Assembly: GCF_006345805.1 (NCBI RefSeq)
Contig: NC_043026.1
Coordinates: forward strand, 10,292,001-10,356,000
DNA length: 64,000 nucleotides
Reading direction: 5' to 3'
Origin: Octopus sinensis
Lineage: Eukaryota
The position numbers and the translations under genes are program-made. Shown here one piece after another: positions 6,289-59,809 of this stretch. The notes beneath the pieces were generated by a model, which searched no databases, was not told the origin of the DNA, and saw only the letters and a program-made list of their open reading frames with translations. How positions within the stretch are numbered: position 1 is the stretch's first letter; each line of letters opens with the position of its first letter.

Positions 6289-7505
<1,217 letters not shown>

Positions 7506-18203: not shown

Positions 18204-19451
18204 CTACCCTTTTCCTGTCTTCCCTGTATGAATATGTCTGTGTCTTGTTAAGATAGAATTTTGAGAAAATGCTTTACCACAGATATCACAATTATATGGT
18301 TTCTCTCCTGTATGAATACGTTTATGTGCAATTAAGTTTCTATTGTCAGTGAATGATTTACCACAGATATCACAGTGATATGGTTTCTCTCCTGTATGAA
18401 TACGTTTGTGTTTCATTAAGTTTCTATTGTTAGAGAATGATTTACCACAGACATCACAATGATATGGTTTCTCTCCTGTATGAATCAGTTTGTGATTCAT
18501 TAAGTTTCTATTGTCAGAGAATGATTTACCACAGATATTGCAGTGAAATGGTTTCTCCCCTGTATGAACACGTTTGTGTATAGTTAAATAATCATTTTTA
18601 GAGAATGATTTACCACAGATTTCGCAATGATATGGTTTCTCTCCTGTATGAATACGTTTATGTGCAGTTAAGACACAATTATAAGAGAATGATTTACCAC
18701 AGATATCGCAGTGAAATGGTTTCTCTCCTGTGTGAATACGTTTGTGTATAGTTAAATTAGAGTTTTTAGAGAATGATTTACCACAGATTTCACAATGATA
18801 TGGTTTCTCTCCTGTATGAATACGTTTGTGATTCATTAAGTTTCTATCGTCAGAGAATGATTTACCACAGATTTCACAATGATGTGGTTTCTCTCCTGTA
18901 TGAAAACGTTTGTGTCTAGTTAAGACATTATTATGAGAGAATGATTTACCACAAATATCACAATGATATGGTTTCTCTCCAGTGTGAATACGTCTATGTG
19001 CAGTTAAGACACAATTATAAGAGAATGATTTACCACAGATATCACAGTGATATGGTTTCTCACCTGTATGAATACGTTTGTGGGAAGTTAAGATTCTATT
19101 TTCAGAGAATGATTTACCACAGATGTCACAGTGATATGGTTTCTCACCTGTATGAGTACGTCTGTGTATAGTTACATGACTAATGTTAGTAAATGATTTA
19201 CCACAGATATCACAATTATATGGTTTCTCTCCTGTATGAGTACGTTTGTGAGCAGTAACATCACCACTCTGAGAGAATGATTTACCACAGATATCACATG
19301 GATATAATTTCTCTCCAGTGTGAATACGTTTGTGTCTAGATAAGTAACTACTGTGAGAGAAGGAATTACCACAGACGTCACAATGATAGGGTTTCTCCCC
19401 TGTATGAATACGTTTGTGCATAATTAGTTTAATTTCTTTTAAAAAAGACAT
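18204..19451 (-). CDS. C2H2 ZNF protein U3, 415 aa, 14 fingers
   Basis: Uninterrupted ORF, all fingers canonical; acceptor at ~19894. Confidence 0.95.
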
Positions 19452-22400
19452 CTATAAAGATATCACAGTCACATGATCTAATCACTTCTCTCATGTGTTC
19501 AGAAGAAATGAATCATACAATTTTTTCACTCTCTTCCAATATTTTGCCTCTCAAATCCCAGCTTATATTTTTTCTTCTTTTTCTTTTTATACTTTATTTC
19601 TTGCAAACAGTTCTTCTGCTGTATTTATGTCCAGTGTTACTTATGTTTAGCAACACTTCAATTAATTTATCCAACTTCAATCAGCACACAGGCTTCTCTT
19701 CTTCACACTCCAGTTGGTGATGTCCAGAAATTTGGCTAATAACATTTTTTCAGAACAAATGTTTCACAGGAATTCTTCTACAGTTTTGTAAAACCAATCT
19801 GATACATCTGTTTCGGAGAATATTTTCTTTTAGTCTTTAAAACAGGATAGAGTTGAGGGTTCGTCTTCCGTTACACCACTGTCATCTGATGCTCTGAAAT
19901 TAAAGACAAAGAACAGTGTCAGATGTAGAGGCTATTTAAAAAAATAAATGATTCATTTCTATAGAGATAATCTGAAGAGATAAACATTTGCCTTAACTGA
20001 GCTGGATGCTGACAGCACCATAAAGAAGTGCTAACCTCTAAAAGCAGATGGAACATGTGGGTCACCCAGAAAGACAGGCTATGAAGTGCTGAAGAACTTT
20101 TCAGGTGAGATGACAAAGGACCAACATTCCTGGGGCCTTGTTGTACTCAAGAAGATCCACACTTCATAACAGATGTGTTAAGACTCATCCCTCTTCTAGT
20201 TAAAAGCACTTACGGCCATTCCTCATAAAAGTAGCCATGCAATGCCACGTAAAAATGCTGCTACATTCAAATGTCCATGTGGTGCCACATAAAAGCACCC
20301 AATGGCACAATATAGAGTGTTTGGCACTTGGAAAGGCATCCAGTAGAAACCATGACAATTCAGACTGAAGGCTGCTGCAGCTCCCCATCCAACCATGCCA
20401 GGATGGACAATGGATAATGAAAAGACGATGATCAAATGAACATCCTAATTTATCAAAATTTACTCCACAGAATCTTGTGTGAAGCTGACATATTTGTAAA
20501 CTACACTGACCCCTCCACATTGTGTAACAGTTTGAAAAGAAAACCACAGAATAGGGGACGCTAACATTAGTCCTTCTGTAGAAATAGAACTTGATACTGT
20601 TCTTTAGATCCAGGTCACTTCTGACAGAGCAGACATGTGATTAATGACATTCCATCCATGACAATCCTGTCTGTTTGTATAGTGTTGTATATCTATGACT
20701 ACATCATCCCCTCAAACCCACACACCCTTTTCTAAACCTTTTTTATACACCCCTTCCCCTTTCGGCTACGGGGAATGCGAATCAGCAAAAATTGACATTT
20801 CTAAACTACACCAACTCCTCCCCCATTTCCATGATTTTAAACTTTTTTCTCCTTAAAATATGCGGGAAAATACGGAGATTATGACAAGGAAAAAAAATTC
20901 CAGAAATCTTTGTAAAATGTTTTTTTAAAGAATTTTTTTCTTTTCTAAAAATGCGGAAAAATACGGAGACATCAGGATACGGACAAAAATTTCAAAGCAT
21001 CTCTGTACTTACGGTTAGGGTTTTTGGGTTAGTGTTACGGAAAAAAGTCAAAATTGAAGAAGTTAGTCGGGGAATTTTCACAATGCCGATTTTTAGCAAC
21101 TTTCCGGAATCTCCGTATTCGAAAACGGGGATTTTTTAGGGAAAAAAAAAATTTAATAAACAAATTTGGGAGAAAATAGGGGTGGGCTTTGGTGGAAGTC
21201 TTTTATTAATTTATTTTATTTCGTTTCCAAGTAATGTTGTAAACATTAACCAAATAAGGTTTTGGCTTCTAAACATTTCAGTGGTCAGGGTGTCTTTCAG
21301 TACATTTCTCAAACTAAAACACGCAACAAACGGGGCAACGATGGAGAGTGCAGACGGTAGCTTCCAAAGCTAGAAATAGCAGCTAAATCACACACGTAGC
21401 TAGAAATAACAGCCAAATCTCGCACAAACGAAGGACATCTCTTATTCATAAAACATAGAAGAGAAACAAAGAAATGACGCGCCAAAAACCGAAACGTCTA
21501 CAGAATTAAAAACATTGAATATTTTCATTGTTTAATACTTACGGAACTGTTTCATAAAGGACAGTGTTGTTATGTATGTGTGTGTCTGGTAGTTGAGGAA
21601 TACATTAGAACTATTATAAATGTATTATTAGCTGATTAAGAGAAATTCACGCACCTGCACATTTAACCAGATATCAACGTCAAGCAGGAAGGACGTTTAA
21701 ACGCGCATGTGTCGGTAGAAAATAGCGAAGGGAGCTAAGTCTCCTTAAATCAATTGGGTTTAATATCTTGTTTATTTATTTATTATTATTTTATCCAGTT
21801 TCAGCACACGAGCTGCGGCCATGCTGGGGCACCGCCATTTGGTGTTGCTACATGATTTTACTTCACAAATGCTTTTTAGCAACTGCCATTTGGTGCATGA
21901 GAGAGTTCGATGCAGCTGCCCTTATTTGCACCTCCTGCCGTGAAGTTGGTTCATCTGGGATACCTGAGAGGAAGAGACCCAGTTTTATTTTAAAGATATC
22001 TGCATCCACCCCATGCAGGTCTCTCAGGTTCTTCGGGAGGATATTGAAGAGATGTGGGCCTTGGAAGCCCAGGCTATCACAATATCTTGTCCTACATCTT
22101 GATGTCAAATTTGAGTCCTTGGCACCACGCAGTGGCACACAGTTCTGGCATTTGTGTAACTCTCGATGCCAAAGTTTGGGACAAGTCCTTCTAGGATCTT
22201 CCGGGTGTATATTATTGCATATCTCTCGTCGATAGCTGGAAATAGTAGCTAAATCTTGCACAAATTATAGACATCTCTCATCGATTGCTAGAAATAGCAG
22301 CCAAATCACGCAAAATTCAAGGAAATCATTCGTTCATAAAACACAGAGGAGAAACAAAGAATCGATGCGCCAAAAAACCGAACGTCTACAGAATTAAAAG

Positions 22401-24546: not shown

Positions 24547-25864
<1,318 letters not shown>

Positions 25865-27870: not shown

Positions 27871-29369
27871 ATGTGTATACAAATGTTGAAGTGAATCCAA
27901 CGGTTTTTCTATGTTTTTCAATGGCTTATAAACACCTTCTTTGCAGCAATTGTTTTTATTTCAGCACACGATCGCAGATCAGGTCACTTGCTATGCAAGT
28001 ACATCTCGGTAAATTTTCCTTATATTTACGAGGGACAAAATCGGATCTTGTTAATTTTCTGAAATCCTCTCCTCACCCCATCGGAAAAGATTTTACCCAC
28101 AAATTTCTTTCTAATCGTAACCTCAGCCGTTTGAAATATATTTATATAAAATTTCACTTAAGAAATCCTTTTTCCCAAAAGTTATGAGGGAAAAACTCGG
28201 ATCTTTTGAATTTTCCAAAGTAATCCCCCACCCCTCGTTGTTTTCCGCGCATTTTTGCTTTGATATTCGTTTCCTTCCCTTTCTTTAACACCCGTTGCAC
28301 AAACCCACACACCCTTTTTTAAACCTTTTTTTTACGGGGAATGCGAATCGGTAAAAAAAATTGACAAAAATTGACATTTCTAAATTACACCGACTCCTCC
28401 CCCATTGACAAAAACTTTTTTCTCCTTAAACTTTTTTCTCCTTTAAACTTTTTTCTCCTTAAAATATGCGGGAAAATACGGAGATTATGATTATGAAAAA
28501 AAATTCCAAAAATCTTCGTAAAATGTTTTTTTAAAGAATTTTTTTTTCTAAAAATGCGGAAAAATACGGAGACATCAGGATACGGACAAAAATTTCAAAG
28601 CACCTCTGTACTTACGGTTAGGGTTTTAGGGTTCGTGTTACGGAAAAAAGTCAAAATTGAAGAAGCTAGTCGGGGAATTTTCACAATGCCGATTTTTGGC
28701 AATTTTCCGGAATCTCCGTATTCGAAAACGGGGATTATAATGGGAAAAAAAAATTTAATAAACAAATCTGGGAGAAAATAGGGGTGGGCTTTGGTGGAAG
28801 TCTTTTATTAATTTATTTTATTTCGTTTCCAGGTAATGTTGTAAACATTAACCAAATAAGGTTTTGGCTTCTAAACATTTCAGTGGTCAGGGTGTCTTTC
28901 AGTACATTTCTCAAACTAAAACACGCAACAAACGGGGCAACGATGGAGAGTGCAGACGGTAGCTTCCAAAGCTAGAAATAGCAGCTAAATCACACACGTA
29001 GCTAGAAATAACAGCCAAATCTCGCACAAACGAAGGACATCTCTTATTCATAAAACATAGAAGAGAAACAAAGAAATGACCCGCCAAAAACCGAAACGTC
29101 TACAGAATTAAAAACATTGAATATTTTCATTGTTTAATACTTACGGAAGTGTTTCATAAAGGACAGTGTTGTTATATACGTGTGTGTCTGGTAGTTGAGG
29201 AATACATTAGAACTATTATAAATGTATTATTAGCTGATTAAGAGAAATCCACGCACCTGCACATTTAACCAGATATCAACGTCAAGCAGGAAGGACGTTT
29301 AAACGCGCATGTGTCGGTAGAAAATAGCGAAGGGAGCTAAGTCTCCTTAAATCAATTGGATTTAATATC

Positions 29370-30335
29370 TTATTTATTTATTTATTATTATTTTAACCAG
29401 TTTCAGCACACGAGCCGTGGTCATGCTGGGGCACCGCCATTTGGTGTTGCTACATGATTTTACTTGACGAATGCTTTTTTGCAAATGCCATTTGGTGCAT
29501 GAGAGAGTTCGATGCGGCTGCCTCATCTACTCCTCCTGCCATGAAGTTGACTCATCAGGGACACTTGAAATTAAGAGGTCCAGTTATTCTGAAGACACTT
29601 ACATCCACCCCATGCAGATCTCTCTGGTTCCTCGGGAGGATATTGTACAGCTGTGGTCCTATGAAGCCCAGGCTATCACAGTATCTTTTCCTACATCTTG
29701 ATGGCAAATTTGGAGTCCTTGGCACCACGCAGTGGCTCCCAGTTCTGGCATTTGTGTAACTCTCAATGCCAAAGTTTGGGACAAGTCCTTCCAGGATCTT
29801 CCAGATGTATATTATGGCATATCTTTCTCGCCTACGCTCTAACGAATAGAGTCTTAATCTCTTGAGTCTTTCCCAGTAGCTTATATGCTGCACAGAGGCT
29901 ATCTTCTTCGTGTAGATTCGTTGGATCGCCTCAAGTTCCGTGATTAACTTGACACTGGATGGTGACCATAGCTGAGAGCAATAGTCAAAGTGGCTTAGGA
30001 CAAGTGTTCTCTAGAGGACCATCGTGGTTTCCTGGTCTCTTGTTCTGAAGGTTCTAAGAATGCATCCGGTCAGCCGCCTACATTTCATTGCAAATTTAGC
30101 AACATGCACATGAAAGGTTGTATCATCACTCATGTAAATACCCAGGTCACGCACTAATTGTGCCTCTGGGATTGCAATCCCTCCAGGTCCAGTGTATTCA
30201 TTGGGTATTGCACTTAGTTTTGCATGCTGATAGCATAAAGCTTGAAGCTTTTCAGCATTGAACTGCATGCTATTCTTTTCAGCCCACTTGTATATATTGC
30301 AGTTAATTATATTTCTTTTTGTCACACCCATCCCA
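29370..30335 (-). mobile_element. CR1-clade LINE, ~1 kb 5'-truncated remnant
   Basis: NIYKWAEKNSMQFNAEK..VRDLGIYMS..ILRTFRTRD.. and QHISYWERLKRLRLYSLERRRERYAIIYIWKILEGLVPNFG. Confidence 0.9.
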
Positions 30336-31257: not shown

Positions 31258-31730
31258 TTTTGGGTGTTTAAATGTTCACGGCCTGAGGACAACTTGGAAA
31301 CAAGACCGTCTCCTACATGACCTCAGGTCCCACCGTCTGGATGGTATAGTTGCGACAGAGTCCAGGGTGAGCAGACGGAGGGATCTCTCTCCCCTCCTAA
31401 ATGGCTACAAGAAATTTATTTCTCCATGCCACCTGGAGTAGGGAGCTATCCTTGTGCTGTTCAGGAGGGCAAGCTGGTCATTGTGGATGTGACGTACAGC
31501 AGTAAGTCTTTCAGGTTGATATGTGTTTACGCCCCTGCAAAAGGGGCAGATAAAGCTGAGTTTCTTCGGAGCATTGAGAAATTTCTTACTTTGTCTCATT
31601 CTATAGTTATGTTAGGAAACTTTAACGCAATCTGTGATGCACGCGCTGATTGCGTTGGCTCGAATATTACTAGAAGAGATCAGGGTTTCTTAAATCTGCT
31701 TGGCCGTTTTCAGCTAGCAAATAGAGAGGC
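31258..31730 (+). mobile_element. L1/Tx1-clade LINE apurinic endonuclease fragment
   Basis: LGCLNVHGLR..DGIVATES.. then (frameshift) FRLICVYAP..KAEFL..IVMLGNFNA, the APE motifs NVxGL, VYAP, GDFN. Confidence 0.75.
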
Positions 31731-31984
31731 CTTTTTTTGTTGCCGTAAGGTTTTGGACTTTCAAAAGTAACAGAAAAAGTACAGAGTTCGTAGATTGATG
31801 AACATTTTCACACCAAATCTGAGATTGAAATTTATTTATTCACCGTAAACTTTATAAAAATGTTATAGAGGTTTAAAGTTTGATTATTTTACACAATCAG
31901 AAAACAGGATTTGTAGATGATAGTTGTGATAAAATAAAAGCAAACATTAGAAGATGAAGTTTTACCCAATGCATGAGAGCTTTT

Positions 31985-33445: not shown

Positions 33446-34546
33446 CTACCCTTTGCCTTTCTTCCCTGTATGAATATGTCTGTGTCTTGTTAAGTCACAA
33501 TTTTGAGAGAATGATTTACCACAGACATCACAATGATATGGTTTCACTCCTGAATGAACATGTTTGTGTCTAGATAAGTGACTACAGTTAGAGAATGATT
33601 TACCACAGATATCGCAGTGATATGGTCTCTCTCCAGTATGTATATATTTGTGTTCTGTTAAGTTACTATTTTGAGAGAATGATTTACCACAGATATCACA
33701 ATGATATGGTTTCTCTCCTGTATGAATATGTGTGTGTCTAGTTAATGTGCTACTTTCAGAGAATGATTTACCACAGATGTCACAGTGATACGGTTTCTCT
33801 CCCGTATGAATACGTATATGTGTAGTTAAGATACTAAGATGAGTGAATGATTTGTCACAGATATCACACTGATACGGTTTCTCTCCTGTATGAAGATGTT
33901 TGTGATTCCTTAAGTTACAATTTTGAGAGAATGATTTACCACAAATATCACAATGATATGGTTTCTCTCCTGTATGAATAGAGTTGTGTCTAGTTAAGTG
34001 ACTACTTTCAGAGAATGATTTACCACAGATATCACAATGATATGGTTTCTCTCCTGAATGAATACGTTTATGTGCAATTAAGACACAATTATGAGTGAAT
34101 GATTTATCGCAGATATCACACTGATACGGTTTCTCTCCTGTATGAAGACGACTGTGTTTTGTTAAGGCAGTATTTTCAGAGAAAGAGTTACCACAAATAT
34201 CACAACGATATGGTTTCTCTCCTGTATGGGTACGCTTGTGTGCAGTAACGTGAATACTTCTTGAAAATGATTTACCACAGATATCACACTGATATGGTTT
34301 CTCTCCTGTATGAGTACGCTTGTGAGCAGTAACATAACCACTGCTAGAGAATGATTTACCACAGATATCACAAGGATATGGTTTCTCTCCTGTGTGAATA
34401 TGCTTGTGTCTAGATAAATAACTACTGTAAGAGAAGGATTTACCACAGACATCACACTGATATGGTTTCTCTCCTGTATGAATACGTTTGTGCATAATTA
34501 GTTTACTTTCTTTAAAAGAAGGACTTTGTACAGACATCATAGCCAT
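33446..34546 (-). CDS. C2H2 ZNF protein ZNF5, 366 aa, 12 fingers
   Basis: Intact ORF; ends HTGKKGKG*; acceptor TTTCAG at ~34970. Confidence 0.95.
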
Positions 34547-36374
34547 ATGATCGCATCTTTTTCATCATGTGCTCAGAGGTAATCAATCATACAATTTTTT
34601 CACTCTCTTCCAATATTTTGCCTCTCAAATCCCAGTTTATATATTTTTCTTGCATTTGTTCTTTTACTTAATTTCTTACAAACAGTTTTTCTGCTCTATT
34701 TCTGTCCAGTGTTACTTATGTTTAGCAACACTTCAATTAATTTATCCAACTTCAATCAACACACAGGCACCTCTTCTTCACACTCCAGTCAGGGTTGTTC
34801 ACAAACTTGACTATTAATATTATTTCAAAGCAAATGTTTCACAGGATTTCTACCGCAGATTTGTAGAAACAATCTGATACATGTGTTTCATATAATAGTT
34901 TCCTTCAGTCTTTAAAACATGGTAGATATTGAGGATGTTTCTTCCGTTCTTTCAATGCTGTGTGATGTTCTGAAATTATAAAGAAACAACAGTGTAAGAC
35001 GCAGAGGCTACTTAAAATATAGAGATTTATTTCTATTGAGATAATCTGTAGATTACCTTAACAACTGAGCTAGAAGCAGTCAGCTCCATAAAGAAGTGCT
35101 GATCTTCAAAAGCAGATGGAACGTGTGGAAGTGTGACACTCAGAAAGACATGGGACGAAGGGCTCAAAAACCTTGCAGGTGAGATGACAAAGGAACGAGA
35201 TCCCTGGCGACTTACTCTACTCCTTAATAGAAGTCTTCAGACTCATCACTCTGCTGGTGCAAAGCATTTGTGGCAATTCTTTATAAAAGTGGTCATGCAG
35301 TGCCACATAAAAGCAATATGAAGAGGTCGGTACCACAAAGGGCATCCAGCAGAAACCACGAAGAATCAGACTGGAGTCTGCTTCAGCTTCTCCAGCCTTG
35401 CCCAATCCATCCAACCCATGGACAGTGAACTTTAAATGATGATGATGAACTTAACATTTTAATTTATTTAAATTCACATCAAAGAATCTCGTGCGGGGCT
35501 GACATATTTGTAAACTACACTGACCCCTCCACATTGTGTAATAGTTTGAAAAGAAAACCACAGAATAGGGGACACTAACTTTAGTCCTTCTCCAGAAATA
35601 GAACTTGATACTGTTCTTTAGATCCAGGTCATTTCTGACAGAGCAGACATGTGTTTAATGACATTCCATCCATGACAATCCTGTCTGTTTGTATAGTGTT
35701 GTATATCTATGACTACATCATCCAATACAGTCCTCAATATTCACGACTGGAAGGTGAAACTAAAGGGAGATGAGCAGACACATGGCCACATGGAGAGTTG
35801 TAAGACCTACAATCTTTATTGCAGATCAAACAAGAATGGTGAGTGACGAAAAGTCAACAGAATTAGAAAAAGAAAGTAACTGATTTCCATCCATGTGATT
35901 TGAAGTTCAGCCGCACAGAGCAGCACCTTGAGCAAGTATCTTGTTTCATAGCACCGGTGCATCTAAAGCCATCTGAGCAAATTTGAAAGACAGAAACTGA
36001 AAGAAGTCTGTCTTGTGTGTGTGTGTCTTCACATCATGTAACGCATATGAATGCACATCAACATGAAAATATGTGCAGACATGGGGGTGGGGTGGAAATA
36101 TTACCTTGCTTTGAAATTGGTGACGGTTGATAACAGGAAGTACATCAATTGTTTTTAGATTCATTTTTTTCTTTGTGTCAAATGTAAAAAGCTTGAAAAA
36201 AGTCTCATTTCATTTGCAAATGAAAAGGGGAAAGAGAATTGAGTTAACATGTAGTTTAGTCTTATAAAATAGTGAAAGTAAATTGCCCCTAAAAACGTGA
36301 AAGTATACTGTGATAGAAATCTGGAGTTACCAACAGGCGATATCCTGGAATTTCATGAAAACAATGTATGTAAT

Positions 36375-36700
36375 AGTTAAGTTAAGTTAATTTTTTGGCT
36401 CAAAAAGCAAAAAGGAAGGCCATGTAGGGGGACATGGAGTTATGTACAGGGAGGGTGTTCATGCAAAGAGTTCAGGCCACTTATGGTCAAGAGAGACTTA
36501 GAACCGAGCAGTCGTCAGCATCTTCACTATCTTGACCTGGACAGAGAAAGCCCCCTCTCCTTCGATTGAGATGAAATCGTTGCAGATAGAGCTTTTCAGA
36601 GTGACCCCGCAGCCGACGCTCTGGAGCAGGAGTGAAGAACAGCTCTTTCGAGAGGTTACACTTTCTGCTTATGATGTTGTGAGCGAGAATGAGATCACCA
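36375..36700 (-). mobile_element. CR1-clade LINE 3' end
   Basis: GDLILAHNII..FFTPAPERRLRGHSEKLY..RR motif and (TTAAC)n tail. Confidence 0.7.
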
Positions 36701-37449
36701 TATAACTGATAGAGCCAATACAAAAATGTGTATATATTTAATATAACATGAAAACTGTACATGTAATTTATATAAGACTAGCCTAAGTACCTGGTGTTAC
36801 TCGTAAGTTTAAAGAATGTTATATATACTTATTCTGATAAAAAATCAAATTTGGTACAGAATGCTCCAGCGGTTTGGCTATGCACATAGAAGAAACACAC
36901 ATGCATGCATGCACACACACACACAGTGAATTTTACAGACACTGAGCTTATGCAGAGCAGATAGCAAATGAGGTATACCACTCTAACAAGGGATCAATTA
37001 ATGCAGGCCACTCGTTATCCATTTCAACTTTTCATGGCATAGAAAAGATTAAGAGTGAAGGGGAGAACACATAAATCCGCTTTAGTCCTTGACAGAACAA
37101 TAGGCCGTATGGCTAGTGGGGAAAATGTAGATTCAATCTTGGATCTGAGGTAGGTCCAATACCCAAGTAGACATTGTCACTTCGAATTTAGATATGAAAT
37201 ATCGAGCTAATTTTATTAGGTCCATTCCGTGAACAACTTGAATAACTCATGTTGATATCTCTAACTTATGTCATGGGAATATTGAACTTTAAAATTTATA
37301 CAGTTTATCGTATAAATTGAAAGATATCCTACTGTATGAACACATTTCTTGATTTAGAAACCTGTTTCTTTTCCTTTAAAACCGTCCTATCAAAATTGTT
37401 TACCTTTAAAGCAAAAAAAAAAAACAAAACGAAACCGATGGATATGACA

Positions 37450-37749
37450 GGTACATAAAACGAGACCGGTGCCAGTGCCACCAGACTGGCTCCTGTGCAG
37501 GTGGCACATAAAAAGCACCATTTGAGTGTGGCCATTGCCAGTACCACTAAACTGGCCCTCATGTTGATGGCACGTAAAAGCACCCACTACACTCTCGGAG
37601 TGGTTGGCGTTAGGAAAGGCATCCAGCTGTAGAAACTCTGCCAGATCAGATTGGAGCCTGGTGCAGCCATCTGGTTTGCCAGACCTCAGTCAAATCGTCC
37701 AACCCATGCTAGCATGGGAAGCAGACATTAAACGACGATGATGATGATG
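37450..37749 (+). mobile_element. RTE-tailed repeat family C (further + copies 37988-38138 and 49590-49888)
   Basis: GTTGGCGTTAGGAAAGGCATCCAGC..CCAACCCATGC..(GAT)n. Confidence 0.8.
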
Positions 37750-38293
37750 CAACAATATTATACAGCTGAACAAAAAAAAACAAAAAAACTAAGTCAAAAG
37801 TGAAACGATTCTAGCGTTATCAAAAGTGAAAGAGTAGTAACACTGGAAAAAACCCCCCAAAAAACAGAAGGGTCGTATGGGGGCGGGGTGTAGATTGATC
37901 CAGCAGTTTAGGTGTGCATAGAAGAAACACACACACAGTGAATTTTATAGATATAGATGAAAACAATCACATCTGCAGTTATTGATGTTATTGGCGTTAG
38001 GAAGGGCATCCAGCCGTAGAAACACTGCCAGATCAGACTGGGCCTGGTGCAGCCTTCTGGCTTCCCAGACCCCAGTTGAACCATCCAACCCATGCCAGCA
38101 TGGAAAGCGGACGCTAAACGATGATGATGATGATGATGAAATGAGATTTGTGAATAGTTATTCAAAATCTCTTAATTTGTGTCATTATGGATGTTGATCA
38201 AGATATGATGTAAATAAATCACCAAGAATCCCACATTGTCATCTTTCTTTTTCTCCTTGATCAACATCCATCGCCCTTCTATAGTCTTTGTGT

Positions 38294-38680
38294 GGAGGTG
38301 CAATGGCCCAGTGGTTAGGGCAGCGGACTCGCAGTCGTAGGATCGCGGTTTCGATTCCCAGACCGGGCGTTGTGAGTGTTTATTGAGCGAAAACACCTAA
38401 AAGCTCCACGAGGCTCCGGCAGGGGATGGTGGTGATCCCTGCTGTACTATTTCATCACAACTTTCTCTCACTCTTACTTCCTGTTTCTGTTGTACCTGTA
38501 TTTCAAAGGGGCCGGCCTTGTCACTCTCTGTGTCACGCTGAATATCCCCCGAGAACTACGTTAAGGGTACACGTGTCTGTGGAGTGCTCAGCCACTTACA
38601 CGTGAATTTCACGAGCAGGCTGTTCCGTTGATTCGGATCAACCGGAACCCTCGTCGTCGTAACCGACGGAGTGCTTCCCA
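38294..38680 (+). mobile_element. tRNA-derived SINE family A, apparently full length
   Basis: A-box TGGCCCAGTGG, B-box GGTTTCGATTCC, ~300-bp non-tRNA body; second copy at 44296-44577. Confidence 0.85.
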
Positions 38681-38899
38681 TCCATAGTCTTTGCATGGAT
38701 GCTGGTCATCATTTGGATAAACAAAAATTTCATGAATCGTTAACAATTCAACAGGTATACAAATTACCAAGATCCACATAAAAAAGGCCCCCGACTGAAT
38801 ATCAAATGTATTTTTGGAAATTTTGTTACATTATTGTCGTCGTTACAGGTTTCTATTGGAAAATCCACTTTTTTTTAAAAGACAATTTACTTTCACAGA

Positions 38900-39180
38900 A
38901 TCATCATCATCATCATCATTTAACGTCTGCTTTCCATGCTAGCATGGGTTGGACGGTTCAACTGGGGTCTGAGGAGCCCGAAGGCTACACCAGGCCAGTC
39001 AGATCTGGCAGTGTTTCTACAGCTGGATGCCCTTCCTAACGCCAACCACTCCGAGAGTGTAGTGGGTGATTTTATGTGCCACCGACACAGGTGCCAGACA
39101 AGGCTGGCAGACGGCCACACTCGGATGGTGTTTTTATGTGCCACCGACACAGGTGCCAGATGAGGCTGGCGAACGGCCAC
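38900..39180 (-). mobile_element. RTE-tailed repeat family C with 2-3 internal ~60-bp repeats
   Basis: (CAT)n tail and TTTTATGTGCCACCGACACAGGTGCCAGA repeats. Confidence 0.8.
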
Positions 39181-40007
39181 ATAGATTTTTATTTAGCAAC
39201 AGATTTCTACAGGAAGAAAAAATTACAACAAAAGCATAAAAGATCAAAAGCCCCTCCCCACCCATCTTCTACCGCTTAACCCCACCCAACTTTTCTCTTT
39301 TTCTTTTTGTTTCATTGGTGAAGCAATTGCGTTTTAATCTCTTGGTAATTGTTTTTTTTATCGTTTATACTTTAACCCTTTAGCATTTAAACTGGCCATA
39401 TCCGGCCCAAAATATTCTACCTGTTTTATGTTCAAATTAGCCATATCTGGTCTCTCACACCAACCCTACAATATTGTTTTAAAAATTAACAGTTACCTCA
39501 TCAAAATCTCATAGCTACAAGATAATGCATGATTAGTTCAAAACAATGTGGATGAAAAAGAATTAATTTTGGCAGAATAATGCGAACACTAAAGGGTTAA
39601 ATGTTTTATCTTTCAGGTCTCTCTGAAAATATATTATCCTATTTTACGAACAAAAACCAAATTATCCATTTACGACAATATTCTACGTGTTAGTCAAGAA
39701 TTGCAATGGTGTTCGGTGTCGTAAGAGTAGGAGGAAATCAGATCTTTTACTATACAGCAATAAATATACTGTAATTACAGGATACAATATTCAATAATAT
39801 ATAATGCATAGGGTTGTCAGGAGGAAGAGTTTTGGTACAGAAGTCCTAACATTAAAGAAAGGAATCCGCACCAGCGGCTGTGGAACAAGGAGAGGTGAAA
39901 ATTTGCGAAAACAAAACACAAAAATTTTTTTTTAATTTTTGAAATACTTCAGTCATATTTTCCATTGCACAAAACAGAAATATTAAAAATATATAATAAA
40001 CAAGAAA

Positions 40008-41947
40008 TTACCCTTTTCCTTTCTCTCTTGTATGAATAGGTCTGTGCTTCATTAAGTTTCTATTGTCAGAGAATGATTTACCACAGATATCACACTGATA
40101 TGGTTTCTCTCCTGTATGAATACATTTATGTCTAGTTACGTCATAATTGCGGATGAAAGATTTACCACAGATATCACAATGATATGGTTTATCTCCTGTA
40201 TGTATATATTTGTGTTCTGTTAAATCACAATTTTGAGAGAATGATTTACCACAGACATCACAATGATATGGTTTCACTCCTGAATGAACATGTTTGTGTC
40301 TAGATAAGTGACTACCGTGAGAGAATGATCTACCACAGATATCACAATGATATGGTTTCTCCCCTGTATGAATATTTTTGTGTACAGTTAAGTTGCCATT
40401 TAGAGTGAATGATTTGCCACAGATATCACAATGATATGGTTTCTCTCCTGTATGAATATGTGTGTGTCTAGTTAATGCACTACTTTCAGAGAATGATTTA
40501 CCACAGATATCACAAGGATATGGTTTCTCTCCTGAATGAATACGTTTATGTGCAATTAAGACACAATTATGAGTGAATGATTTATCGCAGATATCACACT
40601 GATACGGTTTCTCTCCTGTATGAAGACGACTGTGTTTTGTTAAGGCAGTATTTTCAGAGAAAGAGTTACCACAAATATCACAACGATATGGTTTCTCTCC
40701 TGTATGAGTACGCTTGTGTGCAATAACATGACTACTTCTAGAGAATGATTTACCACAGATATCACATTGATATGGTTTCTCTCCTGTATGAGAACGTTTG
40801 TGCACAGTAACATTACCACGGCTAGAGAATGATTTACCACAGATATCACAATGATATAGTTTCTCTCTGTATGAATATGTGTGTGTCTAGTTAATGCATT
40901 ACTTTCAGAGAATGATTTACCGCAGATATCACAATGATATGGTTTCTCTCTTGAATGAATACGTTTATGTGCAATTAAGACACAATTATAAGTGAATGAT
41001 TTATCACAGATATCACACTGATACGGTTTCTCTCCTGTATGAAGACGACTGTGTTCCATTAAGCTAATATTTTGAGAGAATGATTTACCACAGATCTCAC
41101 AGTGATATGGTTTCTCTCCTGTATGAGTACGCTTGTGTGCAGTAACATTACTACGGCAAGCGAATGACTTACCACAGATATCACATTGATATGGTTTCTC
41201 TCCTGTATGAGAACGTTTGTGCACAGTAACATAACCACGGCAAGAGAATGATTTACCACAGATATCACAATGATATAGTTTCTCTTCTGTATGAATATGT
41301 GTGTGTCTAGTTAATGCATTACTTTCAGAGAATGATTTACCGCAGATATCACAAGGATATGGTTTCTCTCCTGAATGAATACGTTTATGTGCAATTAAGA
41401 CACAATTATATGTGAATGATTTATCACAGATATCGCAGTGAAATGGTTTCTCTCCTGTGTGAATACGTTTGTGTTCCATTAAGGTACTATTTTGAGAGAA
41501 TGATTTACCACAGACATCACACTGATATGGTTTCTCTCCTGTATGAATACGTATGTGTGTAGATAAGTGAATTCTTTGAGAGAATGATTTACCACAGATA
41601 TCACACTGATATGGTTTCTCTCCTGTGTGAATACGTTCATGTGCAGTTAAGACACAATTATAAGAGAATGATTTACCACAGATATCACAGTGATATGGTT
41701 TCTCACCTGTATGAGTACGTTTGTGGGCAGTTAAGATTCTATTTTCAGAGAATGATTTACCACAGATATTACAAGGATATGGGTTCTCTCCTGTGTGAAT
41801 ATGTTTGTGTCTAGATAAGTAACTACTGTTAGAGAATGACTTACCACAGATATCACACTGATATGGTTTCTCCCCCATATGAATACGTTTGTGCATAATT
41901 AGGTTACTTTCTTTAAAAGAAGGACTTTGTACAGACATCATAGCCAT
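40008..41947 (-). pseudogene. C2H2 ZNF6, 22 fingers if one 1-bp frameshift (~40866) is corrected
   Basis: ORFs 40640-41947 and 40008-40805 join by restoring TTCTCTTCTG as in the internal duplicate at ~41280. Ends HTREKGKG*. Acceptor at ~42372. The frameshift may be a sequencing error. Confidence 0.85.
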
Positions 41948-42580: not shown

Positions 42581-43410
42581 TACCTATTTCTTTACTACCC
42601 ACAAGGGGCTAAACACAGAGAGGACAAACAAGGACAGACAAACGGATTAAGTCGATTATATCGACCCCAGTGCGTAACTGGTACTTATTTATCGACCCCC
42701 CGAAAGGATGAAAGGCAAAGTCGACCTCGGCGGAATTTGAACTCAGAACGTAACGGCAGACGAAATACCTATTTCTTTACTACCCACAAGGGGCTAAACA
42801 TAGAGAGGACAAACAAGGACAGACAAACGGATTAAGTCGATTATATCGACCCCAGTGCGTAACTGGTACTTATTTAATCGACCCCCGAAAGGATGAAAGG
42901 CAAAGTCGACCTCGGCGGAATTTGAACTCAGAACGTAACGGCAGACGAAATACCTATTTCTTTACTACCCACAAGGGGCTAAACACAGAGAGAACAAACA
43001 AGGACAGACAAACGGATTAAGTCGATTATATTGACCCCAGTGCGTAACTGGTACTTTATTTAATCGACCCCGAAAGGATGAAAGGCAAAGTCGACCTCGG
43101 CGGAATTTGAACTCAGAACGTAACGGCAGACGAAATACCTATTTCTTTACTACCCACAAGGGGCTAAACACAGAGAGAACAAACAAGGACAGACAAACGG
43201 ATTAAGTCGATTATATCGACCCCAGTGCGTAACTGGTACTTTATTTAATCGACCCCGAAAGGATGAAAGGCAAAGTCGACCTCGGCGGAATTTGAACTCA
43301 GAACGTAACGGCAGACCAAATACTTATTTCTTTACTACCCACAAGGGGCTAAACACAGAGAGAACAAACAAGGACAGACATAGGTATTAAGTCGATTACA
43401 TCGACCCCAG
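42581..43410 (-). repeat. Head-to-tail array of 5'-truncated SINE B, 185-bp monomer, 4 full plus 1 partial
   Basis: Monomer starts TAC(C/T)TATTTC at 42581, 42766, 42951, 43136, 43321. Confidence 0.95.
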
Positions 43411-43801
43411 TTATCTCTCTCTTTCACACACACTAACAGAAGCACTTCACTTACACAACATACTGTCTGTCTCCCACACCCCATCAAACACACACACACA
43501 TGTACATCAATGCTTCCCATGCACGGTAACTTCAAAAGAACTTCCCTCGTCATACAATCGCTTTCTCTTAGTCTCTTTCGCTCTCATTACTTCAAAAGTT
43601 CCCGCAAGCCCATATGTAAAAAAAAAAAAAATTTTTACGGAAATCGACGGAAAGGTCTACTAGAGACGAAAGATCGCCCGAACGAACGCGTCTTCCAGTA
43701 AAAGGCGTTCGAAAATATTTTTGTTTTGGGATTTCTCTTCCCACGTCCAGTCGGAAGCATGGAAAAAGTAATAATGTCACTGTAGCAGGTTTCCAGTGGT
43801 G

Positions 43802-44899: not shown

Positions 44900-46370
44900 T
44901 TAAAATAAAATATGGGCTTCTAAACATTTCAGAATATTTCTCTAACTAAAACACACTGATGGCGTCATCAGAAGGTAGCTTCTACAGCTAGAAATAACAG
45001 CCAACACTCAAAAACAAATCATGGGCATCTGAATTCCATAGCAAGAAATAGCAGCTAAATTTCGCACAAATCAGGGACATCTGTATACCATAGCAAGAAA
45101 TAGCAGCTAAATTCCGCACAAATCAGGGACATCTGTATTCCATAGCAAGAAATAGCAGCTAAATTTCGCAAAAATCATGGGCATCTGTATTCCATAGCAA
45201 GAAATAGCAGCTAAATTTCGCACAAATCATGGGCATCTGTATTCCATAGCAAGAAATAGCAGCTAAATTTCGCACAAATCAGGGGCATCTGTATTCCATA
45301 GCAAGAAATAGCAGCTAAATTTCGCACAAATCAGGGTCATCTGTACCCCATAGCAAGAAATAGCAGCCAAATTTCGCACAAATCATGGGCATCTGTATTC
45401 CATAGCAAGAAATAGCAGCTAAATTCCGCACAAATCAGGGACATCTGTATTCAATAGCAAGAAATAGCAGCTAAATTTCGCACAAATCAGGGACATCTGT
45501 ATTCCATAGCAAGAAATAGCAGCCAAATTTCGCACAAATCAGGGACATCTGTACTCCATAGCAAGAAATAGCAGCCAAATTTCGCACAAATCATGGGCAT
45601 CTGTATTCCATAGCAAGAAATAGCAGCTAAATTTCGCATAAATCATGGGCATCTGTATTCCATAGCAAGAAATAGCAGCTAAATTCCGCATAAGTCAGGG
45701 ACATATGTATTCCATAGCAAGAAATAGCAGCCAAATTTCGCACAAATCAGGGGCATCTGTATTCCATAGCAAGAAATAGCAGCCAAATTTCGCACAAATC
45801 ATGGGCATCTGTATTCCATAGCAAGAAATAGCAGCTAAATTTCGCATAAATCATGGGCATCTGTATTCCATAGCAAGAAATAGCAGCCAAATTTCGCACA
45901 AATCAGGGACATCTGTACTCCATAGCAAGAAATAGCAGCCAAATTCGCACAAATCATGGGCATCTGTATTCCATAGCAAGAAATAGCAGCTAAATTCCGC
46001 ATAAATCAGGGACATATGTATTCCATAGCAAGAAATAGCAGCTAAATTCCGCACAAATCAAGGACATCTGTATTCAATAGCAAGAAATAGCAGCTAAATT
46101 CCGCACAAATCAAGGACATCTCTCGTTCATAAAACATAGAAGAGACACAAAAAAACCGACGAGCTAAAAAAAAAAAGACGAACGTCTTCAGAATTAAAAA
46201 CATTGAATATTTTCATTGCTTCATACTTACGGAAATGTTTCATAAAGGACAGTGTTGTTATGTATGTGTGTGTCTGGTAGTTGAGGAATAAATTATAATG
46301 ACAGGACATTTAATCGGATATCGACATCGACATCAATTAAGAAGTACGCTCGATGCGCATGCGTATCCCC
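44900..46370 (-). promoter_or_regulatory. Module E, distal copy upstream of ZNF6, containing the minisatellite
   Basis: TGCGCATGCG at 46354-46363; donor GTAAGT at 46230-46225. Confidence 0.55.
45015..46120. repeat. 52-bp minisatellite, ~21 copies
   Basis: CATAGCAAGAAATAGCAGCTAAATTTCGCACAAATCAGGGACATCTGTATTC at 45037, 45089 ... 45661 ... 46024, ~46075; no spacers. Confidence 0.95.
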
Positions 46371-47808: not shown

Positions 47809-48454
47809 AAAAGCACCATCCGATCGTGGCCGTTTGCCAGCCTCGCCTGGCCCCCGTGCCGGTGGCATGTAAAAAGCACCAACCGATCGTAGCCGTTGCA
47901 AGCCTCGTCTGGCACGTAAAAAGAGCCAACCGATCGTGGCCGTTGCCAGCCTCACCTGGCCCCGTGCTGGTGGCATGTAAAAAGCACCATCCGATCGTAG
48001 CCGTTGCCAGCCTTGCATGGCCCCCATGCCGGTGGCACGTAAAAAGCACCAACCGATCGTGGCCGTTGCCAGCCTCGCCTGGCCCCCGTGCTGGTGGCAT
48101 GTAAAAAGCACCATCCAATCGTGGCCGTCTGCCAGCCTCGTCTGGCCCCCGTGCCAGTGGCACATAAAAAGCACCATCCGATCGTAGCCGTTGCCAGCCT
48201 TGTCTGGCACGTAAAAAGCACCAACCGATCGTGGCCGTTGCCAGCCTTGCCTGGCCCCCATGCCGGTGGCACGTAAAAAGCACCCACTACACTCACGGAG
48301 TGGTTGGCGTTAGGAAGGGCATCCAACCGTAGAAACACTGCCAGATCAGACTGGAGCCTGGTGCAGCCTTCTGACTTCCCAGACCCCAGTTGAACCGTCT
48401 AACCCATGCCAGCATGGAAAGCGGACGCTAAACGACGATGATGATGATGATGAT
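47809..48454 (+). mobile_element. RTE-tailed repeat family C with ~8 internal 47/62-bp tandem repeats
   Basis: AAAAGCACCA(T/A)CCGATCGT(G/A)GCCGTTGCCAGCC repeats followed by the family tail and (GAT)n. Confidence 0.85.
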
Positions 48455-50032: not shown

Positions 50033-50552
50033 GGCGGTGAGCTGGCAGAACCGTTAGCACGCCGGGCGAAATGCATAGCCGTATTTCGTCTGCCGTTACG
50101 TTGAGTCCAAATTTCGTCGAAGTTGACTTTGCCTTTCATCCTTTCGGGGTCGATAAATTAAGTACCAGTTATGCACTGGGGTCGATGTAATCGACTTAAT
50201 CCGGGTCTGTCCTTGTTTAGCCCCTTGTGGGTAGTAAAGAAATAGATAAATTAAGTACCAGTTACGCACTGGGGTCAATATAATCGACTTAATCCGTGTC
50301 TGTCCCCTCTGTGTTTAGCCCCTTGTGGGTAGTAAAGAAATAGATAAATTAAGTACCAGTTACGCACTGGGGTCAATGTAATCGACTTAATACCTATGTC
50401 TGTCCATGTTTGTACCCCCTTGTGGGTAGTAAAGAAATAGATAAATTAAGTACCAGTTACGCACTGGGGTCAATGTAATCGACTTAATACCTATGTCTGT
50501 CCATGTTTGTCCCCTCTATGTTTAGCCCCTTGTGGTTAATAAAGAAATAGGT
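50033..50552 (+). mobile_element. SINE B followed by three extra tandem copies of its 3' half (~95 bp)
   Basis: Re-entry ATAAATTAAGTACC at 50246, 50344, 50441 directly after GTAAAGAAATAG. Confidence 0.9.
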
Positions 50553-51019: not shown

Positions 51020-51605
51020 CACACACATAATCATCATCATCATCATTTAGCATCCGTTTTCCATGCTGGCATGGGTTGGACAGTTCAACTGGGGTGTGTG
51101 AAACCAGAAGGCTGCACCAGGCTCCAGTCTGATCTGGCAGTGTTTCTACGGCTGGATGCCCTTCCTAACACCAACCACTCCGTGAGTGTAGTGGATGCTT
51201 TTTACGTGCCACCCGCACAGGTGCCAGACGGAGCTGGCAAACGGGCACGGACGGATGGTGCTTTTTACATGCTACCGGCACGGGGGCCAGGCGGAGCTGG
51301 CAAACGGGCACGGACAGATGGTGCTTTTTACATGCTACCGGCACGGGGGCCAGGCGGAGCTGGCAAACGGGCACGGACGGATGGTGCTTTTTACATGCTA
51401 CCGGCACGGGGGCCAGGCGGAGCTGGCAAACGGGCACGGACGGATGGTGCTTTTTACATGCTACCGGCACGGGGGGCCAGGCGGGGCTGGCAAACGGCCA
51501 CGAACAGATGGTGCTTTTTACGTGCCACCGGCACGGAGTCCAGTCGGGGCGGCGCTGGCAACGGCCACGATCGGATGGTTCGCTTACTTGTCACCGGCAC
51601 TGGTA
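51020..51605 (-). mobile_element. RTE-tailed repeat family C with ~6 internal 60-bp repeats
   Basis: GATGGTGCTTTTTACATGCTACCGGCACGGGGGCCAGGCGGAGCTGGCAAACGGGCACGG repeats. Confidence 0.85.
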
Positions 51606-52867: not shown

Positions 52868-53269
52868 ATCTGGACCCTTGAAAACCTGTGTCGGTGGCAC
52901 ATAAAAACACCATCCGAGCGTGGTCGTCTGCCAGCCTTGTCTGGCACCTGTGTCGGTGGCACATAAAAACACCATCCGAGCGCGGCCGTTCGCCAGCTTC
53001 ATCTGGCACCTGTGTCGGTGGCACATAAAAACACCATCCGAGCGTGGCCGTTCGCCAGCCTCGTCTGGCACCTGTGTCGGTGGCACATAAAATCACCCAC
53101 TACACTCTCGGAGTGGTTGGCGTTAGGAAGGGCATCCAGCTGTAGAAACACTGCCAGATCTGACTGGCCTGGTGCAGCCTTCGGGCTCCCCAGACCCCAG
53201 TTGAACCGTCCAAACCCATGCTAGCATGGAAAGCGGACGTTAAATGATGATGATGATGATGATGATGAT
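52868..53269 (+). mobile_element. RTE-tailed repeat family C with ~4 internal 60-bp repeats
   Basis: CCTGTGTCGGTGGCACATAAAA repeats, family tail, (GAT)n. Confidence 0.85.
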
Positions 53270-53700: not shown

Positions 53701-54582
53701 CTACCCTTTTCCTTTCTCTCCTGTATGAATATATTTGTGTCTTGTAAAGTTACTACTGTGAGAGAATGATTTACCACAAATTTGGCAATGATACGGTTTC
53801 TCTTCAGTATGAATATGTTTGTGTTCCGTTAAGTTACTACTTTGAGAGAATGATTTACCACAGATATCACAAGGATATGGTTTCTCTCCAGTATGAACGT
53901 GTTTGTGCCTAGATACGTGATTACTCCTGGTGAATGATTTACCACAGATATCACAATGATACGGCTTCTCTCCTGTATGAATATATTTGTGTTTCGTTAA
54001 GTTACTATTTTGCGAGAATGATTTACCACAGATATCACAATGATATGGTTTTTCTCCTGTATGAACATCTTTGTGTTTTGATAAGTTACTAGTCTGAGAG
54101 AATGATGAACCACAGATATCACAACGATATGGTTTCTCTCCAGTATGTATACGTCTGTGCGTAGTTAATGTACTACTGTCAGAGAATGATGTACCACAGA
54201 TATCACAGTGAAATGGTTTCTCTCCTGTGTGAGTACGTATGTGTGTAGATAAGTGAATACTTTGAGAGAATGATTTACCACAGATATCACAATGATATGG
54301 TTTCTCTCCTGTATGAAGACGACTGTGTTTTGTTAAGGCAGTATGTCCAGAAAAAGAGCAACCACAAATATCACAATAATATGGTTTCTCTCCTGTATGA
54401 GTACGTTTGTGAGCAGTAACATAACCACTGTTAGAGAATGATTTACCACAGATATCACATTGATATGGTTTCTCTCCTGTATGAACACGTTTGTGCACAG
54501 TTACATGACCACTGTTAGAGAATGATTTACCACATATATCACACTGATATGATTTCTCTCCTGTCTGAGTACATTTGTGCAT
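53701..54582 (-). CDS. C2H2 ZNF protein ZNF7, 293 aa, 10 fingers
   Basis: Intact ORF; ends HTGEKGKG*; acceptor at ~55055. Confidence 0.95.
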
Positions 54583-55829
54583 AATTAGGTTATATTCTTT
54601 ATAAGAAGAACTTTGTACAGATGTCAGTCATATGATCCTATGTGTTTTACCATGTGTTGAGAGGAAATCAATTCTATAATTTTCTCACTCTTTTCCATTA
54701 CTTTTCCTCTCAAATCCAAGTTTATACATTTTCCTTCCTTTCTTCTTGTACTTTATTTCTTACAAACACTTCTTCTGCTGTATTTCTGTCCAGTTGCTAC
54801 TCTTCTTTAGCAACACTTTCATTAATTAAATCCAACTTTAATTAGTACACAGGCTCCTCTTCTTGACACTCCAGTCGGTGATGTTCACAAATTTGTCTAA
54901 TAATATTAATTCAGAGCAAATATTTCACAGGAATCCTACCAGAGATTCATAGAAACAATCTGATACATCTGTTTCGTATAATAGTGCCTTTAGATTTTAA
55001 AACATGGTAGATATTGAGGATGTGTCATTCGTTACGTCAGAGTTATTTGATGTTCTGAAATTATAGAGAAACAACAATGTAAGATGTAGAGGCTATTTAA
55101 AAAATACAGATTCGTTTCTATTGAGATAAACTGTAGAAATAAACATTTACCTCAACAACTGAGCTGTACGTCTCACAGCTATATAAAGTGCTAATCCCTA
55201 AAAAGTAAACTGAACGTGTGGGAGTGGAACTCCCAGAAAGACAGGTTATAAAGTTCAGAAGATGACAAAGGAAAAAGTTTCCTGGCAACTTGCTCTACTC
55301 AAGATCTGCAGTCCATAACAAAAGTGTTAAGACATATTCCTCTAGAGGCAAAAAGCACTTGTGGCCATGACGTGCTCATGTAGTGCCATAGAAAAGCACC
55401 CTGCGCAATATGAAGTGGTTGGCACTACAAAGAGCATCCTGTGGAAATCGCGACAAATGAGAACGGAGTCTGCCACAGCTCCCTAGCTAGCCTGCTCTGG
55501 TCAAACCATCCAACTGATGCCAGCATGTACAATGGATGTGACCAATGTCACCAGGTATTGGTCAGTTCTGGTGACCAAGTCCTCTTCTTTAGCATGAAGT
55601 CACATGACCTCGTGGTTTGCAAGTTATTAGGAAGTTGCAACTTCCCAAAGCGGGAAAAACGTAGATACGTTTGAGCCATCCTGTGCTTATATAAACAACA
55701 GTTTTCAGCCTTTCTTTCTTTGTAAATTCTAGGAACAGCCCCTACACGCCTGTGTTAGATTTCAGAATGGAATGTCGATGTCAGTTTCTTGATTCAGTCA
55801 TTAAGGCACAGCTAATAGCAAGACATAAA

Positions 55830-57960: not shown

Positions 57961-58512
57961 TATCGATTTGTGTCCAACCAAGTAGTAATTTGTTTGCTCA
58001 TATCTTTCTACAAAATGGATAATATTAAATAGAAATAGCTGAAAATACATCTCACGCGGTGAAAATCTTACACTGTTGTTTCTATATAATTTCAGAACAT
58101 CTGACAACATGTAACAGAATGAACATCCTCAATATCTACCACGTTTTAAAAGCTGAAGGAAACTATTATACGAGACAGATGTATCAGATTGTTCCTGTGA
58201 TTCTCTGGTAGGATTCCTGTGAAACATTTACTCTGAAATAATATTATTAGACAAATTTGTGAACATCACCGACTGGAGTGTCAAGAAGAGGAGCCTGTGT
58301 ACTGATTAAAGTTGGTTTTAATTAATGAAAGTGTTGCTAAGGAAGAGTAACAACTGGACAGAAATACAGCAGAAGAACTGTTCGTAAGAAATAAAGTACA
58401 AGAAGAAAAGGAAGGAAAATGTATAAACTTGGATTTGAGAGGAAAAGTAATGGAAAAGAGTGAGAAAATTATACAATTGATTTCCTCTCAACACATAGGA
58501 TCATATGACTGA

Positions 58513-59559
<1,047 letters not shown>

Positions 59560-59809
59560 CCATATCATTGACATAACTGTGGTAAATTATTGTCTCAGAA
59601 TTGTAACTTATGAAAACACAAATATATTCATAAAGGTGAGAAATGAGAAGACTCGTTTCTTGTTTGGTATGAATTTTTAATATTCCAGGTGCCGAGTGGA
59701 ATGGTCCATCTATCTATCTCTATCTGTTCTGCTCTGAATAGCTTACAACTGTTGCTAAATAAAAACCTATATTCTATGAAAGTAAATTGTTTTTCTGTCT
59801 ATCGCTCCA

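Follow-up and report, generated by a model that had tools for sequence, protein, structure and literature searches.

A window of 64,000 nucleotides from Octopus sinensis (NCBI RefSeq assembly GCF_006345805.1, contig NC_043026.1, positions 10,292,001 to 10,356,000 of the forward strand; positions below are counted from the first letter of this stretch) was found to contain eight arrays of 84-bp C2H2 zinc-finger repeats in tandem, designated U1-U4 and Z5-Z8. These arrays share tracts of identical sequence that are younger than their surroundings and than the genes that carry them, and longer than chance allows. The tracts, their statistical excess, a discordance between the genealogies of flanks and tracts and one chimeric finger were all observed directly. 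The identical tracts were probably left by short-tract interlocus (non-allelic) gene conversion among tandem C2H2 paralogues, with unequal exchange within arrays operating alongside conversion as our best reading of the remaining changes.

A search of the arrays against one another for every exact run of at least 60 bp returned, the young U1-U4 units aside, runs of 190, 91 and 61 bp between Z5 and Z6, of 121 bp between U1 and Z6, of 76 bp between U2 or U3 and Z6, and of 74 bp between Z7 and Z8. The 190-bp run, which had been noticed in a first-pass annotation of this DNA, was reproduced without a mismatch: positions 34039-34228 of Z5, holding two complete fingers (Z5.4 and Z5.5) together with 18 nt at the end of Z5.3 and 4 nt at the start of Z5.6, are identical to positions 40517-40706 of Z6 (the tail of Z6.14, Z6.15, Z6.16 and the head of Z6.17), and the exact run is maximal. 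The same annotation had paired 33510-33585 with 40241-40316; these intervals are displaced by one base and mismatch at 61 of 76 positions, but a true exact run of 91 bp does lie there, between 33495-33585 (47 nt at the end of Z5.11 plus 44 nt at the start of Z5.12) and 40225-40315 (ending at nt 44 of finger Z6.20), at an offset of 6730. The third run joins 33687-33747 (the 3' part of Z5.9 and the head of Z5.10) to 40417-40477 (the 3' part of Z6.17 and the head of Z6.18) over 61 bp. All of these copies are on the minus strand.

Z5 and Z6 had been taken for distant paralogues; they are instead adjacent sister genes, 6.5 kb apart on the same strand and mutual closest relatives by their flanks. 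Their C-terminal halves are collinear once a three-finger indel is allowed for, with Z5.2-6 pairing with Z6.13-17 at an offset of 6478 and Z5.9-12 with Z6.17-20 at an offset of 6730, and all three exact tracts fall on this collinear alignment. The order of finger families around the 190-bp tract, C/D-M-N-A-K, is likewise the same in both arrays. Divergence resumes 1-40 bp beyond each tract, on both sides. The surrounding 420-bp collinear block contains 22 differences, all outside the 190-bp tract and none within it, and the collinear finger pairs that flank this tract are 90-92% identical. The 190-, 91- and 121-bp tracts are each more alike than the sequence on either of their two sides.

Synonymous sites had also been said to be identical, and in the 190-bp tract they are: 0 of ~34 silent sites and 0 of ~134 non-synonymous sites differ. 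Z5-Z6 finger pairs beyond the two whole fingers of this tract gave a proportion of differing synonymous sites (pS) of 0.15-0.17 and a synonymous divergence (dS) of 0.17-0.19, on par with the noncoding flank. The 190-bp tract therefore displays the silent-site homogenisation that is looked for in gene conversion, and because silent sites are homogenised too, selection at the protein level cannot explain the identity. With 0 differences in 190 bp, divergence is below ~1.6% and the event between Z5 and Z6 was thus very recent. As the tract occupies positions that were already orthologous and collinear, it homogenises sister genes and creates no new combination of fingers, and the discordance of the Z5-Z6 tracts is one of age, not of topology.

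A further tract connects Z6 with the U arrays. As first annotated, positions 7001-7121 of U1 (the final 69 nt of U1.5 together with the opening 52 nt of U1.6) are identical over 121 bp to 41644-41764 of Z6, 34.6 kb away (34,643 bp); both copies are on the minus strand and the run is maximal. The Z6 copy belongs to a 129-bp span in Z6.2-Z6.3 (41639-41767) in which no difference separates Z6 from U1, U2 and U3 alike, and exact matches of 76 bp to 41639-41714 were found in U2 (12657-12732) and U3 (18996-19071). Over 168 bp, U1, U2 and U3 are each ~95% identical to Z6.2-3, with no fixed difference between the U arrays and Z6 at positions 13-141; U1 carries private substitutions at positions 15 and 137, and U2 and U3 jointly at 52 and 65. 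The suggestion that U1 is nearer to Z6 than to U2 holds inside the run (0 against 2 differences) but fails over both fingers (8 against 5). Because the substitutions of U1 and of U2/U3 are private to each, the exchange between the U arrays and Z6 took place before U1 and U2/U3 diverged, and because two derived substitutions of U2/U3 fall inside the run, an event specific to U1 is unneeded. The two-finger block, of families I and A, has different neighbours in its two settings (L-I-A-J in the U arrays, E-I-A-G in Z6) and was not found in U4, Z5, Z7 or Z8. It is the sole case that looks like a relocation of fingers, for which the deletion of intervening fingers would be an alternative.

The runs were evaluated by a permutation in which the observed differences were redistributed within each block, with weights set by column variability. 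This gave P = 2e-5 for the 190-bp run (22 differences in the 420-bp block), P < 2e-5 for the 91-bp run (Z5.11-12 versus Z6.19-20) and P = 1.8e-4 for the 121-bp run (U1 versus Z6). Using column-specific rates from 58 orthologue-like finger pairs, the probability of finding no difference across the 190-bp tract is 4e-8. As a baseline, any two fingers are ~79% identical through their common framework, and orthologue-like fingers across arrays are 88-96% identical; the mean difference between any two fingers is 11-14% in framework columns (1-33 and 64-84) and 35% in helix columns.

The genealogy of the flanks rests on the 5' flank between 100 and 450 nt upstream and on segment-wise alignments, which replaced a MAFFT table of 800-bp flanks in which non-homologous distal parts had led to the kinship of Z7-Z8 and of Z5-Z6 being understated. 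Identity of the 5' flanks is 98-99% among U1-U4, 95% between Z7 and Z8, 88% between Z5 and Z6 and 81-87% for the remaining pairs; for Z5-Z6 it is 91% in the first 100 nt and 80% at 450-800 nt, and the 3' flanks are 68-83% identical. The comparison of a finger tree with the flank tree, which the first-pass annotation had put forward as a check, revealed that the two are not congruent: the nearest relative lay in the flank-tree sister array for 39 of 85 fingers and elsewhere for 30, and the other 16 had no relative at 88% identity or above. Whereas the flanks of Z6 are nearest to those of Z5, its fingers Z6.2-3 are nearest to U1-3 (93-96%), and the Z5 array is without any I finger.

Finger gain, loss and chimerism

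Finger families were defined by clustering at 12% distance, and the resulting orders are ECCLIAJBFAFBQH for U1, ECLIAJBFAFBBH for U2, ECLIAJBFAFBBQH for U3, EC.G..G..JABBDH for U4, ECMNAGO.KRSH for Z5, EIAGPAKDMPAKDMNAK.SR.. for Z6, DCNG..O.O. for Z7 and DDD.P.....G. for Z8. The flanks of U1, U2 and U3 are 98.4-99.5% identical, yet the arrays already differ by gains and losses of whole fingers (14, 13 and 14 fingers, respectively). Since flanks no more than 1.6% apart accompany whole-finger differences, structural change in these arrays takes place on the timescale of a handful of point substitutions.

Z6 holds two to three copies of a five-finger (420-bp) block, which are 88-99% identical to one another, and a self-BLAST aligned 40020-41519 with 40440-41940 at 85% identity. 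The identity between copies is uneven, with Z6.7/Z6.12 at 99%, Z6.8/Z6.13 at 98% and Z6.5/Z6.10 at 88%, and this unevenness suggests that homogenisation may occur inside the Z6 array too. Finger Z6.20 (40185-40268) is chimeric. Its nt 1-44 are those of Z5.12, the terminal finger of Z5, with 0 differences, while nt 45-84 show 12 differences from Z5.12 and 4 from Z5.10, placing the breakpoint at nt 44. The specificity residues of Z6.20 consequently mix two Z5 fingers, with Q-C-D resembling Z5.12 and E resembling Z5.10. Z6.17 was considered as a second chimera (5' part from Z5.6 and 3' part from Z5.9) and rejected as too weak, with 1 versus 3 differences in the 5' part and 0 versus 4 in the 3' part.

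The flanks of U4 resemble those of U1-U3, at 96-99% identity (98-99% in 5' and 93-96% in 3'). Nothing in U1-U3 corresponds to its core fingers, U4.3-U4.9 (~24990-25660), whose best matches in the window are 77-95% identical (Z6.4, Z7.4 and Z5.1). This mismatch between flank and core implies that either the core of U4 or that of U1-3 was replaced after the unit had been duplicated. U4 has also degenerated, with an in-frame stop at 25292-25294, a truncated 58-bp finger at 25144-25201 and lost Cys and His residues.

Z7 and Z8 (53710-55085 and 58065-59562, including proximal flanks) form a head-to-head inverted pair, in which the proximal 5' flanks 54652-55085 and 58496-58065 are 92.7% identical. 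Z8.1 and Z8.2 are 98-99% identical to Z7.1, and the other fingers of the pair are not orthologous (88% or less), so that Z7/Z8 is a further mismatch between flank and array. Two recurring protein motifs had been cited in support of exchange, and both are present as described: a ten-residue motif occurs in Z5.4, Z6.15 and Z7.3, and NSGHVTV occurs in Z7.1, Z8.1 and Z8.2. No exchange is needed for either. The ten-residue motif recurs by descent, since its positions are collinear and Z7.3 is 90% identical to Z5.4/Z6.15, and NSGHVTV recurs because Z7/Z8 is a young inverted pair with an in-array duplication in Z8.

Probable gene conversion and its alternatives

The repair mechanism that we propose draws on the conservation of the finger framework and on general knowledge of double-strand-break repair. 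The ~54 nt of conserved framework and linker in each 84-bp finger would provide an anchor for pairing in any register, such that a broken array could pair with a paralogous array either in register or shifted by whole fingers. A few tens to ~200 bp would be copied before the repair intermediate is resolved, leaving both sides of the patch with their older divergence. At least one very recent patch, that of 190 bp, would have passed between the sisters Z5 and Z6; the 91- and 61-bp tracts, which share its collinear alignment, would be further ones, and an older event would have placed the I-A block in the ancestor of U1-U3 and in Z6. The same repeat structure would also drive unequal exchange within and between arrays, giving rise to finger gains and losses, the five-finger duplications of Z6 and chimeras at junctions. 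That the old divergence resumes on both sides of the tracts points to conversion, and away from a single crossover or the recent duplication of a whole gene.

The first-pass annotation had proposed that fingers are exchanged as cassettes across the cluster, as a combinatorial route to new DNA-binding specificities. Exchange of sequence between paralogous arrays is upheld by the analysis, but the 190-bp tract is collinear and homogenising. The finger is not the unit of exchange, as the 121- and 91-bp tracts have both their ends within sequence encoding helices. The I-A block in its different contexts and the Z6.20 chimera are compatible with a combinatorial outcome.

Several observations weigh against conversion as the explanation of these tracts. 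The third-party fingers Z6.11 (96%) and Z7.3 (90%) give no decision on the direction of transfer between Z5 and Z6 or on its non-reciprocity. For the two-finger block shared by the U arrays and Z6, pS is 0.086, with 3 synonymous differences against ~6-7 expected, which is not significant alone, and the 76-bp run between U3 and Z6 gives a permutation P of only 0.04. Differential loss of fingers can also produce discordant nearest neighbours. To these must be added the points that speak for an artefact, namely that the tracts arose through misassembly or polishing, with reads of one paralogue correcting another, or through partial collapse of repeats. Mis-mapped short reads used in polishing could give patches of false identity of read length, and the tracts measure 61-190 bp; the 1-bp deletions found in short A runs in two arrays could be uncorrected long-read errors. 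No independent copy was found by exact-protein look-ups of nine open reading frames (ORFs) of the window, and an exact scan of metagenome contigs with a 52-nt piece of tract gave 0 matches.

An artefact of this kind is nonetheless unlikely. Tandem 6.3-kb units with 98.4-99.5% identity to one another, containing exact runs of 756 bp bordered by differences, are resolved in the assembly, and the window is without a single N. In addition, the tract shared by the U arrays and Z6 is present in three U copies with private substitutions in each, a pattern not expected from polishing error. The tracts are thus presumably present in the living genome.

Less probable still is that single reciprocal unequal crossovers generated hybrid genes, of which the identical stretches would be the remnants of junctions. 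Unequal exchange itself is clear from the whole-finger indels of U1-U3, the three-finger indel between Z5 and Z6, the five-finger duplications of Z6 and the chimeric Z6.20. However, a single crossover leaves one entire side young, and the 5' and 3' flanks of Z5/Z6 are both old, while a double crossover at the scale of a tract is operationally the same as conversion. Plain common descent, in which the tracts would be the slowest-evolving parts of once-duplicated genes, kept by chance or by purifying selection, is very improbable: fingers are constrained, Z5 and Z6 are sisters with collinear C-terminal halves, and descent adequately covers the recurrence of the two motifs, but the silent sites inside the tract are identical against the pS found just outside it, the orthologous Z7.3 has diverged enough from Z5.4/Z6.15 to indicate that the sequence is not intrinsically frozen, and a uniform process is rejected by both the permutation and the rate-based tests.

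Layout of the cluster

The arrays constitute a tandem C2H2 poly-zinc-finger cluster, with 28-residue fingers, TGEKP-type linkers and several adjoining genes. U1-U4, Z5, Z6 and Z7 are encoded on the minus strand and only Z8 on the plus strand. The first-pass estimate of ~110 fingers was close to the count obtained here, 112 finger tiles over the eight arrays, 106 of which are complete by regular expression, and Tandem Repeats Finder reported a period of 84 for the finger arrays.

U1 (6298-7472, minus strand) has 14 fingers, one of which, U1.11, is 1 bp short through a deletion near 6575; U2 (11958-13049, minus) has 13 fingers in an ORF at 11949-13112; U3 (18213-19388, minus) has 14 fingers in an ORF at 18204-19451; and U4 (24556-25789, minus) consists of 15 degenerate finger tiles. 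Z5 (33455-34462, minus), recognised from the ORF list, by regular expression and tiling of fingers and by Pfam, has 12 fingers in an intact ORF at 33446-34546; Pfam families PF00096 and PF13465 match 12 stretches each. Z6 (40017-41863, minus) has 22 fingers divided between two ORFs, 40640-41947 and 40008-40805. Z7 (53710-54549, minus) has 10 fingers in an ORF at 53701-54582, and Z8 (58555-59562, plus), head-to-head with Z7, has 12 fingers.

The reading frame is open throughout in Z5, U2, U3, Z7 and Z8. In Z6 it is broken in finger Z6.12, where a deletion near 40866 has removed 1 bp, as seen from a three-frame translation and from the alignment of Z6.12 with Z6.7 and Z6.17. Relative to the closest sister finger, the deletions in Z6.12 (~40866) and U1.11 (~6575) both lie in short A runs, and they are either young inactivating mutations or residual indel errors of the assembly. 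The sequence adjoining the arrays yielded no N-terminal domain, whether KRAB, SCAN or other, and stops are present in all frames in the 900 nt 5' of five arrays. A homology search with the Z5 protein returned matches of 50-60% identity from many animals, among which long vertebrate zinc-finger proteins (ZNFs) dominated (best ~60%).

U1-U4 are embedded in a tandem repeat of ~6.3 kb. Downstream of U4, 28442-29830 is a partial fifth copy of the spacer of the U unit, 94% identical to 20836-22231, which no further finger array accompanies, so that the tandem repeat either stops or has been cut short at this point, adjoining retrotransposon remnants. The ORFs at 29555-30331 (minus) and 31426-31770 (plus) appear retrotransposon-like by eye only and have no Pfam match. 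An ORF at 60134-60697 (minus) is a fragment of a retrotransposon of the type without long terminal repeats (non-LTR), whose best matches are proteins of Octopus sinensis and O. vulgaris at 74-82% identity, in keeping with an octopod locus. The spacer between Z6 and Z7 is packed with non-coding tandem repeats (42581-43411, 45014-46121, 47809-48284, 50152-50506, 51196-51547 and 52884-53097), including a 185-bp unit in 4.5 copies (97% matches) and a 52-bp unit in 21 copies (93%). Several G+C-rich arrays of 62-63-bp units in this spacer give rise to long spurious ORFs, and a 97-bp array resembles the reverse complement of part of the 185-bp unit. The window as a whole is AT-rich (~39% G+C), and a scan of it against Rfam gave 0 matches.

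Relation to known zinc-finger systems

In several vertebrates, short conversion tracts have been detected with GENECONV among lineage-specific poly-zinc-finger paralogues that also gain and lose fingers and have an elevated non-synonymous rate (dN) at helix positions (Emerson & Thomas 2009, PMC2604467). The octopus cluster resembles these vertebrate KRAB-ZNF and other poly-zinc-finger paralogues in its tandem C2H2 genes, its short runs of identity and its turnover of fingers, but its host is an octopod and its arrays are without an adjoining N-terminal domain of the KRAB, SCAN or other type. The array of PRDM9 is a coding minisatellite with an 84-bp repeat that evolves by duplication, deletion and gene conversion, and whose units defy a simple tree (PMC3890296). 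The whole-finger indels of U1-U3 and the chimeric finger are products of the same type. Turnover in PRDM9, however, takes place mainly within one locus, between alleles, whereas the clearest tracts described here are between genes 6.5 and 34.6 kb apart. Paralogues of mouse KRAB zinc-finger proteins (KZFPs) undergo a 'drifting and shifting' of finger-coding sequence (PMC5363842), and tandem paralogues with register-shifted or rearranged fingers and similar flanks, as in U4 compared with U1-U3, are common to both systems. The mouse KZFPs differ in being a mammalian KRAB family under KAP1 control.

Cephalopods have undergone very large lineage-specific C2H2 expansions, and octopus-specific clades are co-localised on few chromosomes (PMC12513265). 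The window resembles one tandem cluster of this octopus-specific expansion. That study, which works with trees of whole proteins, leaves exchange among paralogues aside, and in the literature that we examined on cephalopod or metazoan ZNF expansions conversion is not mentioned. With these tracts, a known process is seen in a lineage that has been studied less; the mechanism is not new.

It could be envisaged that out-of-register conversion, with degenerate arrays (U4, perhaps also U1 and Z6) as donors, is a regular and selectively exploited source of new helices and finger orders, although we regard this as unlikely. If true, it would be a germline analogue of the pseudogene-templated diversification of immune genes, with the I-A block and the helix of Z6.20 as its products.

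Patchy conversion combined with register shifts means that whole-protein trees of cephalopod C2H2 genes would mix histories. The ages assigned to 'octopus-specific' expansions, calls of orthology and codon-model tests of positive selection are possibly distorted as a result, and the same caution on trees and selection tests has already been given for vertebrate ZNFs (PMC2604467). Recombination should therefore be taken into account whenever cephalopod ZNF expansions are placed on trees, dated by duplication or tested for selection.

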